From NCBI GenBank assembly GCA_964234715.1, contig OZ174279.1: a stretch of DNA of 64,000 nucleotides; one strand, 5' to 3'. The stretch is from Podarcis melisellensis. Taxonomy: Eukaryota. Positions 5,881 to 60,200 of this stretch are shown piece by piece. The notes beneath the pieces are model-generated. The model was not told where the DNA came from. It did not search any database and was given only the letters and a program-made list of their open reading frames with translations. The translations under genes and the position numbers were made by a program. Within the stretch, counting starts at the first letter, position 1; every line of letters begins with the position of its first letter.

Positions 5881-6470
5881 AGTGCTTTGAACATTTGAAG
5901 ATGCTATATTATTATACAGTAGTAGTATTAGGCCAAAGGGTGAGCGACTGAGCCCAGACCCCTGGACATTGTCATCTGCTTCACATATAGATCACAAAAG
6001 GATTGTGGCGAAGGGCTGGAGGAGGCAATGTTGCTTGTGTATGCTGCATTTCAGGGTACTTATATTTGGGGGATTATCTTTGTTGTGCTAAAGGTAAGTC
6101 CTTACACACCTCAGGTGAATCATGTCTGGTTAGTGTTTAGAGAGAGACTTACAGACCCCTAAGGATATATACACCTGTTTCCTCTTGGTCTGTCTGTCTT
6201 GTAAAAATGCAGTAACTTTGTGAGTGAAGGAGGAAAATTCTCCCTCTCTGAAATGGAAGAAGGTGACACTGTTTATTCCTGTGGGTTACCCAGTGGTGAC
6301 ATGAAGTGTTTGGACTGTTACTCCCAGGTACCCCTTTAGTTTAACAGAGATTACTTTTCCCTATGCCTGTTTTTGATATCAGCCAACTATTGTTTGTTTG
6401 TTGCTGAGAACATCTGCGGCTAAGGAAGCATTCTGTCTAACCAGAAAGTTTGCTTCCTTCATTTTGCTTC

Positions 6471-7380
6471 CTATACTCTCTATACGTATGACTGTACAGC
6501 CATCTATTCCAGCAACAAAATCATCAAGTTTGCTGATGACACTACGGTGGTGGGGCTCATTTCAGGAGGGGATGAGTCCGCCTATCGGGACGAGGTGGAG
6601 CGGCTCTGTGTTTGGTGTGGAGAGAACAATCTGGCTCTTAATACGGCTAAGACCAAGGAATTGGTGGTGGATTACAGGAAAAAAAAGGCGGACATTCAGC
6701 CCTTGTATATCAACGGGGAACGGGTGGAGAGGGTGGCGGAATTCAGGTTTTTGGGAGTGACTATCGATCAGGGCATGACTTGGAGCGCAAATACCACTGC
6801 TCTGGTGAAGAAGGCCCAGCAGAGAATTTATTTCCTCAGACTTTTAAAGAAGAACAATCTGAGTGAGAGACTGCTGGTGTCCTTCTATCGAGGCTCCATA
6901 GAGAGCATTCTCACATACTGTATTTGTGCTTGGTTCTCCAGTTGTACAGCTAGGGAGAGGAAGGTGCTCCAGAAGGTCATAACCACAGCCCAAAGGATTA
7001 TTGGTCATCCTTTCCCATCTTTGGAAGAACTGTACGGTTCCCGTTGTCTTAGGAAAGCAAACAACATCCTGCAGGATTCATCTCACCCGGGATACAGTCT
7101 GTTTGCACTACTGCCTTCTGGCAGGAGATATAGAAACATCAAGTCAAGGACAAATAGACTGAAAAATAGTTTCTATCCAAGAGCTGTGGCCTTTTTGAAT
7201 GCTGTAACTCGATAGTGTGACCTGGGAGTTTGATGGGTGTGGGTGTGGGTGTGGCTGGAATGTGGTTTGTTTGGTTGTTGTTGTTGTTTTGCTTTTGTTG
7301 TTTTTTAAGGGATGGCATCCAATTTCGTTGCACTTGTGCAATGTTGCACTTGTGTAATGACAATAAAGAATCTATCTATC

Positions 7381-50336: not shown

Positions 50337-53099
50337 ATGCAACCACAATGGCTATGCACAAACACCACGACCTCTGCTGCTGTTTGCTTTCCCACATATC
50401 TTCACAGGGAAGTGCTGGGTACTGTATTCAAATGGGTTTTGTTTGCCTCCCTTTCATTCTTGATATTACTGTTAAGGCTAGCAGTCTTATGTGCAACTAC
50501 TACTGAAACATCTGCTGTGGTTCATCTCTGTGTCAATATGAAGTATTCAGACTCTTCATTGCAAATGGGATCTGAAGTCTTCCTTCAAAAGTGCAGCAAG
50601 CTTGCTTCTGGTCAGCTGTACAGATGCCACATAAAGAGAACCCTCCTTAAAAGTTGCTAGAGGCATTGATTTTCCAAGAATAAAATGAGGACAAATGAAG
50701 CAATCAAAACAGTATCAAAGTCTGGGTAGGGAGCTGGCCCTGATTTTATACCTAGTGTAGCATCAGGCTCTCCCAAGTTAGGTGTTGCAAGATTGCCCCC
50801 CCCCCAGTTGGGAATCTGAGTGTAGTGCAGTGTAACTTTCTCCCAGTTCCAGTCACTACACAGAGGCAGATTAAGGTCCAAAACAGTTTACTGCTGCAAA
50901 AGATCAGGTCTCAGTAATACAGTTCCAGATGTTGACATATGCATGCAGCCTGTAAGCTTTGCAGATACAGATACATACAAGTAGAAAATATCTATGTTGC
51001 TCCAGCAATTCAAGACATAGACACAGACCCATTGACTGACTGATGAGCTAACATGCCTTAATCAAACACACACACACGACACTGGGCCATAGGAACTGGC
51101 TTTGCTGACCTTGCATCTGTTGGCTTATGTCAGACATGGGGTGATTTGTGGCCATGAAATAAATTAATGCCTTCATGTCCATTTCCTCCAACATTATCCT
51201 CCATAAATTTGTCTAATCCTCCTTTAAAGGCATCCAAGTTGGTGGCCAACACAGCCTCCTATAGGAGCAAATTCTATAGTTTAACTATGCACTTGCATGA
51301 AGTGTTATTTTATCTGCCCTGAATCTTCCAATCAGTTTCATTGGATGTCCATGAGTTCTACTATTTCACCAAAAATGCATCTGTGGCCTGCCAAGGTCAA
51401 TGCTGCAGCTTTTGGAGGACTGGCCATGCCACCTCTGGGGTGGGGAAGGTTGCAAAATGGAGAGATTTGCCTCTTCCCACCTCTTGCACCCTTATGATCC
51501 TGAAAGAGCAAGGGTCCTAAAACACAAATCTATAAACAGAGTGCCATCTAGTGACCAATGGATGCAACAGCATCACCCTATAACATTCACTACTCCTTGC
51601 ATACTAAGAACTCAGCAGAAAGTTGAAATGGGTGGTCACATAACTCCCTATACCATGGATGGGGAAGCTGTGCCTCTGCAGATATTGCTGAACTCCAACT
51701 TCCATCAGCTCCAGTCATCATGGCTACTGGTCAGGGATGAGAGCTATAGTCCAACAATATCTGGAAACCCACAGGTTTCCCATCCCTGCCCTATGGTGTG
51801 AGGAGTCATTTTCCAAGAAGAGAATAAAGCAGCTCAAAATTAAAGAGGCTCATACTTGTGAGGAACAGAAGTCATTGATGATATGGTGTGTCTGGTACTA
51901 ACACAGAGAAGCTGCCCAAAGTACCAACAACTCTAGTGCAAGTGGAGAAAAGAAAGTGGCTAGTCGAAGCGAACAGCATCAATCAGATTTCATCTCAATT
52001 GTCACACAGGTGTTTCTTTTATTTCTGAGACAAAAAGCCTCACCATCACAGAAACTTTTGATCTTAAAGTTGCTTGTTTCTACACATCAGATTACGATCA
52101 ACCCTATCTGAAGCCTAAAATGATACAGAGAAAAAAGCAAACAGGATGCAAGTATTTATTATTTGACAATATGAAAATGTTAAAGCCAAGCAGACATAAA
52201 ATAAAGCAACAGCAAAATAGATGTTCAATCACACCCCTATGAAATTCTAAACCATCCTAAGTATTTGTAGTCAATTCAATTTTTTTAATGACTAGTTCCT
52301 CAAAAAAGGAACTAGATTTTCTATTATCCTTTCACTATCAGCACTTAGAATTGGGCAATATAAAAGTGTTACATATGCAAATAAAGTAATGACAATTGTA
52401 CAGAAAAGCAGCAATCTTTCCTCAGTAAGGTTTGCCAGGAGACCACTATGTTACTAGTCCAAACATAAAGCTGTACTCTTGCCAAGTAAGCAACCCTGAA
52501 AAGCTAGTAAAAGACCAGCTCAGTCCAAAACATGACAAGATTCTGTCGTGGCTCCTCCCCTCACCCATCTTGTCCTCTCACTCACCAGACTCTGTCCTGG
52601 CTTCACCTGCATCGAATGCAACCCTGCTCTGCCAGAGAGGTGGCATTTTTCAAAAGGAAAACAGTAACCAAGGGAATACGTCAGTCAAGCACATCTACCG
52701 ACATTGGAGATTATTGTTCACCCACCGGAAACGGGCAAGACTTTTCCAGGAGCAACCTAGGTGTCCACTTTCTTTTAAGAGGGGTTGGGGTTCTACAGGG
52801 TTTCAGACAGACGCCTTTCCCAGCCCAGCCTGTCGGCGTCAGAAATAGAACTATATGCATACAAAGCGTTTACTCTGCCAATGAGCTTGCAGCCCTTTCC
52901 CTGTTCGATATTTACTTCATTTTTATCCAACTTTTTAGCCAAGGAGTTTGGGCAACTCAAAGCCTCACACACACTGGGGCGGGGGAGGAGAGCCGCCAGA
53001 ACAACCCTGTGAGGTAGGCTAGGCTGCGAAAGTGACTAGGAATGTCACCGAGTGAGCTTCGTGCCTGAGCTGGAATTGGAAGCCAGGTGACAGTTCAAT

Positions 53100-54300
53100 C
53101 ACTGAACCGCCTTGGTTCGCTATTCCTGCAGCCGGCCTCTCCCTAGAGGTGAGAAGCGTGCTCTGAGGCGCGCCGTTAGCTACCCCTCAGGTCTACGGAG
53201 GCCCCAGCCTAGAAAAGTAGGTCAAACCTCAAGGCAGCGGACCACAAGCTCCTCCTTCTCCACAGATGTGCAGCGAGGCGGAAAGTCGGCGGTGGAGAAG
53301 CCTACCGCTTTCGTGCGCTTACGCAAGACTCCGCCCCTTGCGCAGCGTTTAATCAAACAAACCCCCCGTGGCTACGCTCTGCGCTTGCGCCTTAACCCCC
53401 GCTACTTTGTTTATTTCCCCTCCCGCGTGCGCAGTAGCCTCCTACGGGGTCCGTTCAGTAGCTACGCATGCGCTCCAAGGCCGCTGCTCAGAGCTGCCGT
53501 TGCTCGCCTGCGCAGTGGGCCGCGATCTCGTTTTCGCGCGTGCGCATTGACACGCCCCTCCCCCTGCCGGTCCCTCGCGCCTGCGCGGTTAGGTAGTTTT
53601 CTCAGCCGCCCTTCCCCCACGTCCTTTTCGTTCGCTCAAGCAGCTGCTTTGTTGGACTGCTCGCCCCTGCTCCCTTCGCCTGGCGCGCGGTGGGAAGGAG
53701 GTGGAGCCGCACGTGATCAGCAGCAGCGGCCCCGGTTGGCAGTCGAGCGAGCAGGGCGGTTGGTTCCGGCTCGGACCGGTTGGGGCTGGTTTTCCCCGCG
53801 CAAGCGCAGCCCGCCCCGGTTAGAGCGCAGGGAAGGGCGATGGCGGCGGACGGGAGTCCCGGAGCAGGCCTGGCGGGGATGGTCGACGAGGCGCGGGGGG
53901 AGCCTCAAGGCACACCTGGCCCCAGCCCTGTGGCTGCCGTCGCCTCGCCCAACGAGGCGTCCCCGGCGAGACCCGACCCGGCGGGCCCCGAAGCGGATCC
54001 CGACAGCGGCTCCGGAGCTGTGGGCAACGGGGGCCTTCGGCGGTTCCTCTGCGGCGTCGTAGAAGGTAAGGGGAGAGCGAGGGGCTGCGGGGCCGGGCGA
54101 ATTCGCGGTCGAGAGCGAGGAGGAGAGGCCGTAGCCGAAACAAAGCATCCCCGCCTCTCCCTCCAGCGCCGTCTCCTCCTCCTCCCCGCTCCATTTTCTT
54201 CTGGCTCCGCCCTGGGAATGAAACCTGGCGGCGGAGGGTTAAAACCGTTTGCTCTCCTGCGGTAAAGGCGAAGCTGCCCCTTTCAGTGCATCGGCCTTCC
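53100..54300 (+). promoter_or_regulatory. OGA: OGA CpG-island promoter with clustered NRF1-like sites (e.g. 53380-53390, 53464-53473, 53536-53546, 53577-53586) and E-box CACGTG (53710-53715)
   Basis: Very high GC/CpG density against a CpG-depleted background; repeated GCGCNTGCGC-like motifs. Confidence 0.85.
53840..54065 (+). CDS. OGA: OGA (MGEA5, O-GlcNAcase) exon 1; second in-frame ATG at 53879
   Basis: Ends RRFLCGVVE G|GTAAG as in vertebrate OGA; which ATG is used is uncertain. Confidence 0.9.
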
Positions 54301-54524
54301 AATTCGCTGAATTTAAATGCTGCAAACTTCCGAGCCACATGTTGGTTCTTCCGTTCCCTGGTTGGTTCTTCAAGTACCAGTGTTATGCTGCTGCCTAGAC
54401 TAGGAGTGGGAACCTGTAGCCTGCCCCCCCCCCCAGTTGTTAGAGTCCCACCAGCCCTAGACAGTATGATCGTTGGCAGGCTGTCATGGGAGATATGTCC
54501 CACATAATGCTCATGGGGTCTTGA

Positions 54525-55485: not shown

Positions 55486-56909
55486 ACCTGTAAGGTATCA
55501 TGTTGGCTACCTCTGAATCTGGAGAGGTGGACCTGCAGGCTTATGAAAGGCGTGTTCCTTCAGCTTGAAGATATAATCTTGTTCACAGTTGGTGGTAGAG
55601 GAGCATGCATGAATTTTGATCTAGCATAGATTTAAGCTGTGAATATCAGCCTAAATCTAAAGGTTGGTGGTTTTTTTCCACCCACACAGTAGGTGTTGTT
55701 AGCTGTGGTGTTACATGATTTTTTTCTGTGGCATGTTGTAGGTTTGTGGTTTTGATGAGATCTCAATATGGAAAAGGAGGTTTATTTACAGCTTGATTAA
55801 TATAGAAAAGGGGTAGCTAATGTGTCGCCCTCCAGAAATTTTAGACTGAAATTCCCATCATCCTTGAATATTGGCTATGCTGGCTGGGACTGATGGGTAT
55901 TGGTATCACATTGGCTATCCCTAGATATACACACTATCTGTATGTGTGCCTACTTTGTGGGAGAATTGAGAAGTCAGATGGCTACCAGATGTTGTCAGGA
56001 ATTAAATAGGTTTATTAAATCAGTCATGATTTGTGTATATGCAAAATGCCTCTTCTAAATAGCAACTTCTATTACAAGGTGTATATATTGTCTCATGCCA
56101 GTCATGTTTGCACTTTTGTGAAAGTACAGCCAGGCACAGACATAACTCCCCCAAACCCTTTGTTCCTGGAGTGAGAAGCTTGTAATGAAAACTGCCATAT
56201 TGATGGTTTTGGCAACCGGAGAAGAGCATAACAGCTTCCCACGCTGGCAGTTGTCTGAGTATTTTTGCAGGCACTGTCGGGGGAGGGTTCATTCTTACCC
56301 TCCTTACAATCATGTTTTAAAACACTCTAGCTCCACTTCTGATTTAATGCTTTGCTTCAGGGCTTAAGTTGGGTTTTAAAAAATGTGAGCTCAGGAGGCT
56401 ATTATTTTTGACTGGGCTAGTAGCCTTGTAAAAACTTGTGGTTGCCAGGACCCTGCCTCTCCCCTTGTCCCTCTCCCCAAGTTACTGGAATAACATGATT
56501 GTGAATTGGCTGTTTGTGAATGGGCACTTGCTGAGATGTAACGTTCAGGACCTGTGTGCATTTTTCTGTGAGTTACCCAGGTGCATGGATTCCATTGGTA
56601 ACAGATTTGGAAAGGCGGCTTGTGTCATAGTCACTATGATGGCAGGCCTCGTTCACATCAGGGAAATGAACTGAGTGTACATTAGAACAGATTTTCAAAA
56701 GGTCATACTTTGCTCCAAGAAATGCATTCCAGTAGTGCTAAACAGGACATAAGTTCCAACATGTATCATGCATACAGGTTTGATCTCGCAGCATTTTACA
56801 CTGCCGTACTTGTTTATATGTAGCGCTTCAGGCACTACTTAAAGGAACAACTGAGGCCTATTTATTTCAAACCCACTAGATGCAGCTTTGGACAGCTAAC
56901 TTGTACAAG

Positions 56910-57676
56910 TGTCAGGGTTTCTGGGAGAGAGGAGGAGATGACAGAGGAGACGGAGAGCGAGTGGGAGGAGGGGCAGAAGGATGAGGAAGAAGATGACGGA
57001 ATTCTGAGGGAATCCACGAGTCTGAGCAGCGAGTCAGAGGATTCTCAAAAGGGGGTTACCTTAATCAAGCAAAGGGGAGGAGAAGGGAGAAGCGGAGAGG
57101 AGCCCAGTGGAAGACAGAGGAAGCAAGAGACGTCTCAGCCGGAACGGAGTAAAGGGGGTGGAGTCGTCAGCCTCTCGGAGGGAGCAGGATTAGGAGAGAA
57201 CAGAGAGAGGGGGTTGGAGCAGGGTGTTCAGCCGGAAAGGGTGGAGAGCAGAACAGGGGGTGGTGTAGCGGTCGAAAGAAAGGTCAGCAGCAACGTACGC
57301 GCGCCAAGTTCAAACGTAGAGGCGCGCGGAAGTGGAGAGAGCTCAGGGGAGGAGCCCGGCCCTAAAGCCAGAAAGAGGGGGGAAGAGGCGGCAGAGGATT
57401 CAGCCTCAGGCGAGTCACGGAGAGAGGGAACCCAGGGGGGCAGGAAGACCCTGCGGAAAAGAAAGGAGAGGAAGAGGTGGTCTAGAGCCAGGCTATTAAG
57501 TTGGTGCGGAAGAGGGGAGGAGTCAGAGGGGACTTCAGCGGTCTAACGTGGCAGACGTACGGCCACAATGCTGAACTGTATGAGAAGCAGAAATCTTCAA
57601 TAAACTTTTCCTGTAAATAAGCTGCAACGGAGTGAGGTCTCTTGTGAGCTGGGACCCGTCCTGGGTGGCCGTGACA
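56910..57676 (+). repeat. 5' LTR (TATA-like TATTAA 57494-57499, predicted TSS 57525, AATAAA 57599-57604)
   Basis: Direct repeat of 58006-58772 with no differences seen by eye; terminal inverted TGTCA/TGACA. Confidence 0.93.
56938..57546 (+). CDS. Hypothetical 202-aa U3-encoded ORF (acidic N-terminus, basic C-terminus), 5' LTR copy
   Basis: ORF track; uninterrupted; no recognised homology. Confidence 0.35.
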   Translation: MTEETESEWEEGQKDEEEDDGILRESTSLSSESEDSQKGVTLIKQRGGEGRSGEEPSGRQRKQETSQPERSKGGGVVSLSEGAGLGENRERGLEQGVQPERVESRTGGGVAVERKVSSNVRAPSSNVEARGSGESSGEEPGPKARKRGEEAAEDSASGESRREGTQGGRKTLRKRKERKRWSRARLLSWCGRGEESEGTSAV

Positions 57677-57678
57677 GT

Positions 57679-57689
57679 AAGTCCCCTCT
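57679..57689 (+). other. Self-priming primer-binding site AAGTCCCCTCT
   Basis: 2 nt after the 5' LTR; exact reverse complement of AGAGGGGACTT at 57525-57535 inside the LTR. Confidence 0.85.
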
Positions 57690-57696
57690 CCCAAAG

Positions 57697-57880
57697 CAAA
57701 AATTTTTTGCGTTGCTCACCGCCTTAGATTGGCCAAAGGACAGTAAACCGGTCAGAGATCTTTTTTGGGAGGGATTGAGCCCCCCCATCAAGGATGAGAT
57801 CGCTAGGGGGGACAGACCCCAGACCCTAGAAGACGTGGTGCACCGGGCTTTAGCTATTGGAATTCGACATGAGGGGCGTC
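57697..57880 (+). pseudogene. Gag (capsid C-terminal-like) remnant KFFALLTALDWPKDSKPVRDLFWEGLSPPIKDEIARGDRPQTLEDVVHRALAI
   Basis: L-D-W...F-x-E-G-L-S-x-x-I-K-D-E...P-x-T-L-E pattern resembles Ty3/Gypsy sushi/PEG10-type Gag; no pol sequence present. Confidence 0.7.
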
Positions 57881-58000
57881 CGTGGCACGAGGAGGACGGG
57901 CCCCAAGCGCGTGCGCAAGCAAGGACTCTCCCTTTTGTGCACAGGGACTTCAGCCGTGCGCACCCCTCGCCAATGGGGAAGGGGGGGCTTCGAGGGGGGG

Positions 58001-58642
58001 ATGGATGTCAGGGTTTCTGGGAGAGAGGAGGAGATGACAGAGGAGACGGAGAGCGAGTGGGAGGAGGGGCAGAAGGATGAGGAAGAAGATGACGGAATTC
58101 TGAGGGAATCCACGAGTCTGAGCAGCGAGTCAGAGGATTCTCAAAAGGGGGTTACCTTAATCAAGCAAAGGGGAGGAGAAGGGAGAAGCGGAGAGGAGCC
58201 CAGTGGAAGACAGAGGAAGCAAGAGACGTCTCAGCCGGAACGGAGTAAAGGGGGTGGAGTCGTCAGCCTCTCGGAGGGAGCAGGATTAGGAGAGAACAGA
58301 GAGAGGGGGTTGGAGCAGGGTGTTCAGCCGGAAAGGGTGGAGAGCAGAACAGGGGGTGGTGTAGCGGTCGAAAGAAAGGTCAGCAGCAACGTACGCGCGC
58401 CAAGTTCAAACGTAGAGGCGCGCGGAAGTGGAGAGAGCTCAGGGGAGGAGCCCGGCCCTAAAGCCAGAAAGAGGGGGGAAGAGGCGGCAGAGGATTCAGC
58501 CTCAGGCGAGTCACGGAGAGAGGGAACCCAGGGGGGCAGGAAGACCCTGCGGAAAAGAAAGGAGAGGAAGAGGTGGTCTAGAGCCAGGCTATTAAGTTGG
58601 TGCGGAAGAGGGGAGGAGTCAGAGGGGACTTCAGCGGTCTAA
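58001..58642 (+). CDS. Hypothetical U3-encoded ORF, 3' LTR copy; extends to a strong-Kozak ATG at 58001 beside the PPT (213 aa)
   Basis: Same frame as ORF 57857..58642; gggATGG context; stop is followed by AATAAA at 58695. Confidence 0.4.
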   Translation: MDVRVSGREEEMTEETESEWEEGQKDEEEDDGILRESTSLSSESEDSQKGVTLIKQRGGEGRSGEEPSGRQRKQETSQPERSKGGGVVSLSEGAGLGENRERGLEQGVQPERVESRTGGGVAVERKVSSNVRAPSSNVEARGSGESSGEEPGPKARKRGEEAAEDSASGESRREGTQGGRKTLRKRKERKRWSRARLLSWCGRGEESEGTSAV

Positions 58643-58772
58643 CGTGGCAGACGTACGGCCACAATGCTGAACTGTATGAGAAGCAGAAATCTTCAATAAA
58701 CTTTTCCTGTAAATAAGCTGCAACGGAGTGAGGTCTCTTGTGAGCTGGGACCCGTCCTGGGTGGCCGTGACA
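58006..58772 (+). repeat. 3' LTR (AATAAA 58695-58700)
   Basis: Direct repeat of the 5' LTR, preceded by the PPT and followed by the TSD. Confidence 0.93.
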
Positions 58773-58946
58773 ACAAGTTTACCTCTTTAGTTCTTACTGT
58801 GCCCTAATTAAAGTTGCTTAACAAATGTATATAATGAATTATTAAACTAATAATTATTAGTTTATTATGGCTTAGATGTTGCACTTGATATTTTGTTAAG
58901 AAGCAGCACAATATTTGAAACTGTCTACCATCAATATTTCCCACAG

Positions 58947-58998: not shown

Positions 58999-60200
58999 GT
59001 ATGTGGCATTGTATACTGTAGCATTCTAATACATAAATTTTGGGGAGGGGGGCTTATTGGGTCATTGTTTTTGTTTTGATTTTATGTATTTGATATTTTT
59101 GTGAACTGCCCTGAGTCCTTTGGGTATAGGGTGGTATACGAAATACAGTAAGTAAGTAAGTAAGTAAGTAAGTAAACAATAACAATTAGTCGTAAAAATA
59201 AAGAATTTGTTTAGTGCAGAATTAAGGCATAGGTTTTGAAAACTAAAGTATGGAAGGAGAGGAGGAGCCAAAAGGTCATAGAAAATTGACTTGATTTTTG
59301 CTTTCAGTGACTGTTCTAAGCTAACTCATAATAAATCAAATCAAACCTCTGAAATTCAATTTCTATGCCGTTTTTCATTCAAATGAATCCCAAAGTGGCT
59401 TCAGTTAATAATAGTGTGATAAAACAATACAGATGCAGTATAAATCATATAAAGTAATTAACAAATCATCAGCAAAACAATTGCTATATATAAAACACTG
59501 TTAACAAAGCAACAACTAATAAGCTAAACATCACAATTAAAGCAAAAGTAATATATGATTAACAAATCAATACAACATGTAAACAATTTCAACAATATTA
59601 TTAAAATAAATAAGCAGAATCCAGCAAAAATCATTTATATACCACTTAATATTTCAAAAGCTCTGAGCAGCGTTTTTAAGTTAAGAAAATGAATAGTGTC
59701 CTCCAGTTTCCAAGCATATCACAATCAATATGTCAATTTATTTTGCAACAAACTTATGGGCATTGGAAAATAGAATAGCACCAATAATAGATTTATAGTG
59801 ACTTTCTGTGTTATATATTGAATTTCCTTGAAAATTATCTGCCAGAATGGTTGCATCTGCACACTTTCCCACCACATAAGATGCACTGTTCATACCACAG
59901 TCCCTCCAGCAAAGCAGTTTCCCAGAATGTACTACCACCTGAAAAAAACCTTGAAGTAACATTTTTAAAGAAAAATAACAAAAAGTAGAAGCTTGTAGAA
60001 CATAAAGCATCTAACCATGGTCACAGATTTAGATTTGTATATTTGGTCCTCTTATTTATCTTCCTTATTTGTTCAGGTGTACCATTCTTGCTTTTTCTCC
60101 CTGGGGCGTTGCAGAACTTGCATGGTACTCTTGGCTATACAATTAAGCAATGCAGATTTGTACAATGTATTTCAAACAACATTTTAATTTTGCTTTGTAG

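Follow-up and report, generated by a model that had tools for sequence, protein, structure and literature searches.

An LTR element in the window and its relatives

The window, that is, the whole 64-kb stretch of Podarcis melisellensis DNA analyzed here, contains an element of 1863 bp, which consists of two direct repeats with 100% identity and 329 bp between them (Table 1). Within the inter-LTR part lie a PBS, a reading frame resembling gag, and a purine stretch adjoining the 3' LTR, and the same 5-bp target duplication borders both ends of the element. The structural definition of an LTR retrotransposon includes TG...CA LTRs, a target duplication, a PBS, and a polypurine tract (PPT), all of which were found here. 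By the criterion of identical LTRs, the element is young. No second copy of it was found within the 64-kb window. The border between R and U5, placed from the AATAAA signal, probably lies near 57620-57630, and the GT that follows the 5' LTR would be the two nucleotides that an integrase trims off the cDNA end.

Table 1. Positions of the element's features in the window
Feature	Position	Strand	Remarks
Left target-site duplication, ACAAG	56905-56909	+	Same 5 nt directly after the 3' LTR
5' LTR, 767 bp, TGTCA...TGACA	56910-57676	+	Identical to 58006-58772
TATA-like TATTAA, weak	57494-57499	+	31 nt upstream of the 11-mer, counted from the first T; not conserved
Putative self-primer 11-mer, predicted start of R	57525-57535	+	Second copy at 58621-58631 in the 3' LTR
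TAA stop of the long U3 frame	57544-57546	+	9 nt beyond the 11-mer; functional counterpart in the 3' LTR at 58640-58642
Nested stem, 5' arm	57558-57566	+	ACGGCCAC plus one G-U pair; helix 3, 9 pairs
AATAAA polyadenylation signal	57599-57604	+	CAATAAA invariant across the five aligned families
U5 hairpin	57636-57656	+	GGTCTC (57636-57641) pairs with GGGACC (57651-57656); helix 6
Nested stem, 3' arm	57665-57673	+	Pairs with 57558-57566
GT dinucleotide between the LTR-terminal CA and the PBS	57677-57678	+	ACA + GT/GC + PBS in all seven families
PBS	57679-57689	+	Exact complement of 57525-57535
Leader remnant with the first deletion junction	57690-57708	+	Junction within 57700-57708
gag fragment, in the reading frame of 57679	57700-57982	+	Residues about 171-268 of a 358-aa gag
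Sequence after the second junction, including the PPT	57983-58005	+	Purine run abuts TGTCA of the 3' LTR
Open frame across the PPT and all U3 of the 3' LTR	57857-58642	+	Stops in R; corresponds to the pol tail in intact relatives
3' LTR	58006-58772	+	Identical to the 5' LTR
Right target-site duplication, ACAAG	58773-58777	+	Directly after the 3' LTR

Three other features of the window were recorded. A 222-codon frame at 6547-7215 (+) matched ALKBH8_N (E 4e-20), a domain seen in the tails of LINE-type reverse transcriptases, and this stretch is probably a fragment of a non-LTR retrotransposon. Positions 53000-54500 form a GC-rich block of up to 71% GC, in which open frames overlap on both strands and gave no Pfam match; the block looks CpG-island-like and is possibly a host promoter or first exon, approximately 2.4 kb upstream of the insertion. 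At 59147-59175, which is 375 bp downstream of the element, a perfect (AGTA)n microsatellite comprises 7 units.

Because Pfam searches of the 132-aa gag fragment and of the LTR reading frames gave nothing significant, the gag fragment was identified with HMMER against representatives. It matched residues 171-268 of P0001, a gag protein of 358 aa, with 64% identity (E 2e-33). P0001 carries the Ty3_capsid and Retrotrans_gag/PEG10 capsid domains and a zf-CCHC zinc knuckle. When P0001 was used as the query in a word-index search, seven more gag proteins with 62-76% identity were retrieved. The relatives of the element were taken from the contigs of the near and the more distant gag matches, which came from Logan contigs and one chromosome assembly. 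LTR, PBS, and gag were present together in four contigs of the near group and in the distant L012 and L016. The contig of another gag protein, P0005 (L017), was scanned for direct repeats only and stands outside the count of seven families used below. Two near-family contigs contain the PBS and no LTR (L003:26-45 and L004:26-45), and their PBS variants, AAGCTCCATCC and AAGTCCCCTCC, end in C rather than T.

L016 is a full element in a chromosome-scale assembly, with LTRs that are 99% identical. Its PBS starts at 5961, its gag lies at 6001-7227, and its pol frame comprises 1332 codons with protease, reverse transcriptase, RNase H, integrase, SH3_Tf2-1, and chromodomain; the gag and pol frames are open, separate, and overlapping. 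Like the gag of the near families, L016 gag contains the Ty3_capsid and Retrotrans_gag/PEG10 capsid domains. The pol domains differ from copy to copy: none was found in the window element, protease and reverse transcriptase only in the near-family contig L003, and the series RT-RH-IN-SH3_Tf2-1-Chromo in both L012 and L016. The best matches of the relatives' pol were Podarcis muralis proteins with 83-95% identity, followed by Anolis, Xenopus, fish, and fungal polyproteins with 40-48% identity, all of which have a chromodomain.

Pairing between the LTR 11-mer and the PBS

The preliminary description of this DNA had reported that the 11 nt beginning 2 nt past the 5' LTR, AAGTCCCCTCT, are the exact reverse complement of an 11-mer within the LTR, AGAGGGGACTT, and that an 8-bp nested stem (ACGGCCAC at 57559-57566 with GTGGCCGT at 57665-57672) would bring the two together. 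Rechecking of the coordinates showed that both the match and the stem are real, and the PBS does lack the TGG start of a tRNA-type PBS, as had been stated. The duplex in the window copy is exactly 11 bp long, since the flanking C/C and C/T are unable to pair. The exact 11-mer is found nowhere else in the 64-kb window than at the two LTR positions and, as its complement, at the PBS, and of all 11-mers in the window just 0.05% match the LTR in reverse complement. The LTR, however, is 70% purine, and because of this composition such a match also arises in shuffled sequences: in 4.1% of 5000 dinucleotide-preserving LTR shuffles, at least 11 nt matched the first bases after the LTR (offsets 0-6), corresponding to p ~0.04. 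The match in the window copy alone is therefore suggestive, not conclusive. Folding of 57525-57700, which the preliminary description had proposed as a check, gave an MFE structure that pairs both 11-mers and the nested stem, although the z-score was just -1.7.

The end of the LTR and the start of the PBS (57674-57682) together read ACA/GTAAGT, which comes close to the consensus of a 5' splice donor and overlaps the PBS. GTAAG is present at this place in all close families (L001, L002, L004, L005, L007, and L009), and GC replaces GT in both distant families. The donor-like sequence may be no more than what CA+GT at the LTR end and CTT at the primer's end produce.

As a further test of self-priming, the preliminary description had named compensatory changes between families, and here the relatives gave a clear answer. 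All seven families share one layout, in which the LTR ends with ACA and is followed by 2 nt (GT or GC) and an 11-nt PBS, whose exact complement lies upstream in the LTR. The distance from the 11-mer to the PBS is 154 nt in the window and 131-151 nt in the six other families. The LTR 11-mer is AGAGGGGACTT in the window, AGATGGAGCTT in L002, AGATGGGACTT in L005, AGACGGAGCTT in L007, AGACGAGGCTT in L009, ACTGTCGGAAT in L012, and ATTAGGAGGTT in L016. No two of the seven are the same, and each is matched by a PBS in the same position that is its exact complement. Among the close families the PBS varies at 5 of its 11 positions, and in the two distant ones at most positions, with the LTR 11-mer changing in step. 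All 77 primer/PBS pairs are Watson-Crick, without a single G-U pair, and the duplex is exactly 11 bp in every family, with non-pairing bases on both sides. Every 11-mer begins with A and is preceded by C (7/7).

These data bear on whether a host tRNA (through its 3' end or an internal half) or another host RNA might serve as the primer, the match in the LTR being due to chance. The shuffle frequency of the single-copy match would leave room for this. However, the PBS has no TGG start, and the PBS and the LTR 11-mer change together between families. Because one unchanging host tRNA could not follow PBSs of seven different sequences, a tRNA primer is excluded in practice, and we assign priming by any host RNA a negligible probability. 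No host tRNA genes were found within the 64-kb window.

The structure around the duplex was analyzed in an alignment of the five close families (the window, L002, L005, L007, and L009), with L012 and L016 kept outside it. RNAalifold predicted the 5' end/PBS helix, the nested stem, and the U5 hairpin. In the 5' end/PBS helix, 55 of 55 cells were paired and 4 of the 11 columns showed double compensatory changes. The nested stem had 91% of its cells paired and four pairs with changes on both sides, indicating that it co-varies as well, and the corresponding values for the U5 hairpin were 100% and two pairs. For the structure as a whole, the observed covariation was reached in 0 of 500 shuffles, and pairing fell from 91% to 35-41% in a control in which the partners were slid. 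Single-sequence folds of L012 and L016 gave the same terminal helix as in the window. G-U pairs and a few mismatches occur in the neighboring structural helices but not in the primer/PBS helix.

That the 11-bp helix sits within a larger co-varying R-U5 fold might be read as a sign of a conserved RNA structure for packaging, dimerization, or translational control, with something else acting as the primer. We regard this as very improbable. The 3' arm of the helix lies exactly where a PBS is expected, 2 nt past the LTR CA, in all seven families, and no alternative PBS candidate with TGG was found after the LTR. In addition, 77 of 77 Watson-Crick pairs, against G-U pairs and mismatches in the neighboring helices, fit a PBS that is regenerated by templating. 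The covariation across seven families thus strongly supports self-priming of the Tf1 type, as the preliminary description had proposed, and on these sequence comparisons we consider it very likely.

Published work on Tf1 provides the frame for reading these features. As described in PMC7175516, the first 11 nt of Tf1's own RNA form the complement of the PBS, and RNase H cleaves between nt 11 and 12. The preliminary description had argued that the pairing fixes the transcription start at 57525. From the analogy with Tf1, the sharp limit of the duplex common to the families, and the conserved C/A, we predict that transcription probably starts at exactly this position. The initiator-like TC/A that had been pointed out was borne out, as the 11-mer follows TC in the window and C/A is conserved in 7/7 families. 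The TATA-like box, which had been cited as well, is present 31 nt upstream of the 11-mer in the window, and L002 has ATATTAA at the aligned place, but it is not conserved: L005 and L007 have GTCTTGAAC there. It was therefore rejected as support for this start. Aligning contigs to the element brought out no sign of a start or an end.

The non-conserved box is also a point in favor of a different reading, in which self-priming is real and transcription starts upstream of 57525, the primer being released by cleavage or used with a 5' overhang. Moreover, a reading frame crosses the site, so that promoter signals are mixed with coding constraint. Against an upstream start, one and the same A terminates the duplex in seven families, and the position next to it is an unpaired C-C. 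Had the primer been longer, its extra bases would be copied into the PBS side, and the complementarity would grow over time. The A at +1 is kept after C in 7/7 families, and in Tf1 itself the RNA's initial 11 nt are the primer (PMC7175516). On balance, an upstream start seems unlikely, and the start at 57525 is preferred.

In summary of the control region, this part of the element is very likely the R-U5-PBS region of a Ty3/gypsy chromovirus of lizards (Tf1/sushi-like) whose own RNA primes its minus strand. By analogy with Tf1, transcription would start at A57525, and the RNA would fold back, with the nested stem and the U5 hairpin bringing the 11-mer and the PBS together. The element's RNase H would then cut between nt 11 and 12, and the released 11-nt RNA would prime synthesis through GT, U5, and R. 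During plus-strand strong-stop synthesis the primer would be copied, so that the PBS would be re-created from the 11-mer in each cycle. Such regeneration, as expected from the published Tf1 mechanism, would explain why all pairs are Watson-Crick and no G-U intermediates are seen.

Deletions and the reading frame in U3

Contigs of other species contain approximately 541 extra letters between window positions 57700 and 57708 (X6 record 22; X4 record 15) and run on into gag after window position 57982 (X4). In the gag alignment, query residue 7 corresponds to residue 171 of P0001. These extra letters and the start of the gag alignment show that the window copy is a deletion derivative: the greater part of the leader, ~165 codons at the start of gag, what follows the retained piece of gag, and the whole of pol are gone, with junctions at 57700-57708 and 57982/57983; the first deletion would have removed the ~541 nt of leader together with the ~165 gag codons. 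What the copy retains is the LTR, the PBS, 22 nt of the leader, approximately 95 codons of gag, and the PPT. A short A/T run common to the leader and gag (at about codon 165) contains the first junction. A junction in a short common run is typical of template switching, which suggests that the first deletion arose in this way. It is possible that the deletions occurred in the cycle that made the insertion, or that a mini-element was propagated as such.

The family is very abundant in the best-matching run, with 3903 contigs, 1689 of them at 99% or more. The family contigs in this run show other deletion joints too, four of them at 57924/57925. Among the best-supported differences listed for genomic copies, no variants fell in the 11-mer or the PBS. 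As the window copy is without pol, any self-priming by its RNA would need reverse transcriptase, RNase H, and integrase supplied in trans by intact relatives.

The LTR contains a long open frame (56938-57546), whose copy in the 3' LTR is continuous with the inter-LTR sequence from 57857 onward. The frames in the relatives lie at L002:2-667, L005:3-617, L012:2-2893, and L016:7218-11216, and in L012 and L016 the U3 frame forms the end of pol, beyond the chromodomain. All five close families have an in-frame TAA or TAG in the same column. The stop, which lies 9 nt beyond the 11-mer in the window, lies 12 nt beyond it in L012 and L016, so that a pol stop 9-12 nt past the primer is seen in three lineages. 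Differences between families are approximately twice as common at third codon positions; between L002 and L005, they number 38, 36, and 75 at positions 1, 2, and 3, respectively.

Taken jointly, these observations allow a reading that we put forward tentatively and with some doubt: all of U3 would be pol coding sequence, the primer and the transcription start would lie inside pol codons, and the window copy would be a natural minimal replicon mobilized in trans. If U3 is coding, the 11-mer would be under triple constraint, as coding sequence, as promoter or start site, and as primer, and the end of the reading frame would mark the U3/R border independently. If the window copy is such a trans-mobilized replicon, it would define which sequences self-primed reverse transcription requires in cis in a vertebrate.

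Comparison with known and predicted self-priming elements

To our knowledge, self-primed reverse transcription has been demonstrated only in Tf1 of fission yeast, and for vertebrates it is a prediction from sequence. The evidence for Tf1 comes from Levin (1995, 1996) and Lin and Levin (1997, 1998), as summarized in PMC7175516. The same mechanism is described as predicted for Tf2, Tj1, Tcn1, and the vertebrate Tf1/sushi group in PMC7175516, PMC4600332, and PMC6317226, the vertebrate prediction being that of Butler et al. (2001) as cited in PMC4600332 and PMC6317226.

Like Tf1 and Tf2 of Schizosaccharomyces pombe, the lizard element combines an 11-nt PBS matching the predicted RNA 5' end with RNA stems that include a U5 hairpin and with a 5-bp target duplication, and its relatives, which belong to Ty3/gypsy, have a chromodomain integrase and SH3_Tf2-1. 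Unlike them, it has a vertebrate host and an R-U5 of about 150 nt, and its cleavage and priming are predictions from sequence; furthermore, gag and pol of L016 are separate overlapping frames, and pol of the relatives runs on through U3. The likeness to the vertebrate Tf1/sushi elements (sushi-ichi) lies in the chromoviral type, in self-priming predicted from complementarity between the 5' end and the PBS, and in a gag akin to the PEG10/RTL capsid domain. Compared with those elements, the present families are from lacertid lizards and offer natural covariation across seven families, and their membership of that clade is putative, with the pol matches as indirect evidence.

A PBS complementary to an upstream LTR segment is also reported, by sequence, for Tj1 of S. 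japonicus and for Tcn1 of Cryptococcus and the plant Tcn1 clade (PMC4600332, PMC7175516, PMC6317226); these have other hosts and other sequences than the lizard element. For the plant CRM group A centromeric chromoviruses, coding sequence is described as extending into the 3' LTR; their LTR encodes the CR targeting motif, and a tRNA primes their reverse transcription (PMC3059260). In the lizard elements, by contrast, the chromodomain is followed by a charged tail of low complexity that spans U3 completely and ends just beyond the self-primer.

The known mechanism is unchanged by these results. Self-priming has already been published, as a prediction, for the vertebrate Tf1/sushi group. For annotation, they mean that PBS finders based on tRNAs will miss such families. 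The seven matched pairs of 11-mer and PBS constitute a natural series of compensatory mutations, of the kind that was used experimentally in yeast, and they suggest conservation of the mechanism, with both the 11-nt length and the 2-nt spacer, among lizard elements that were active recently.
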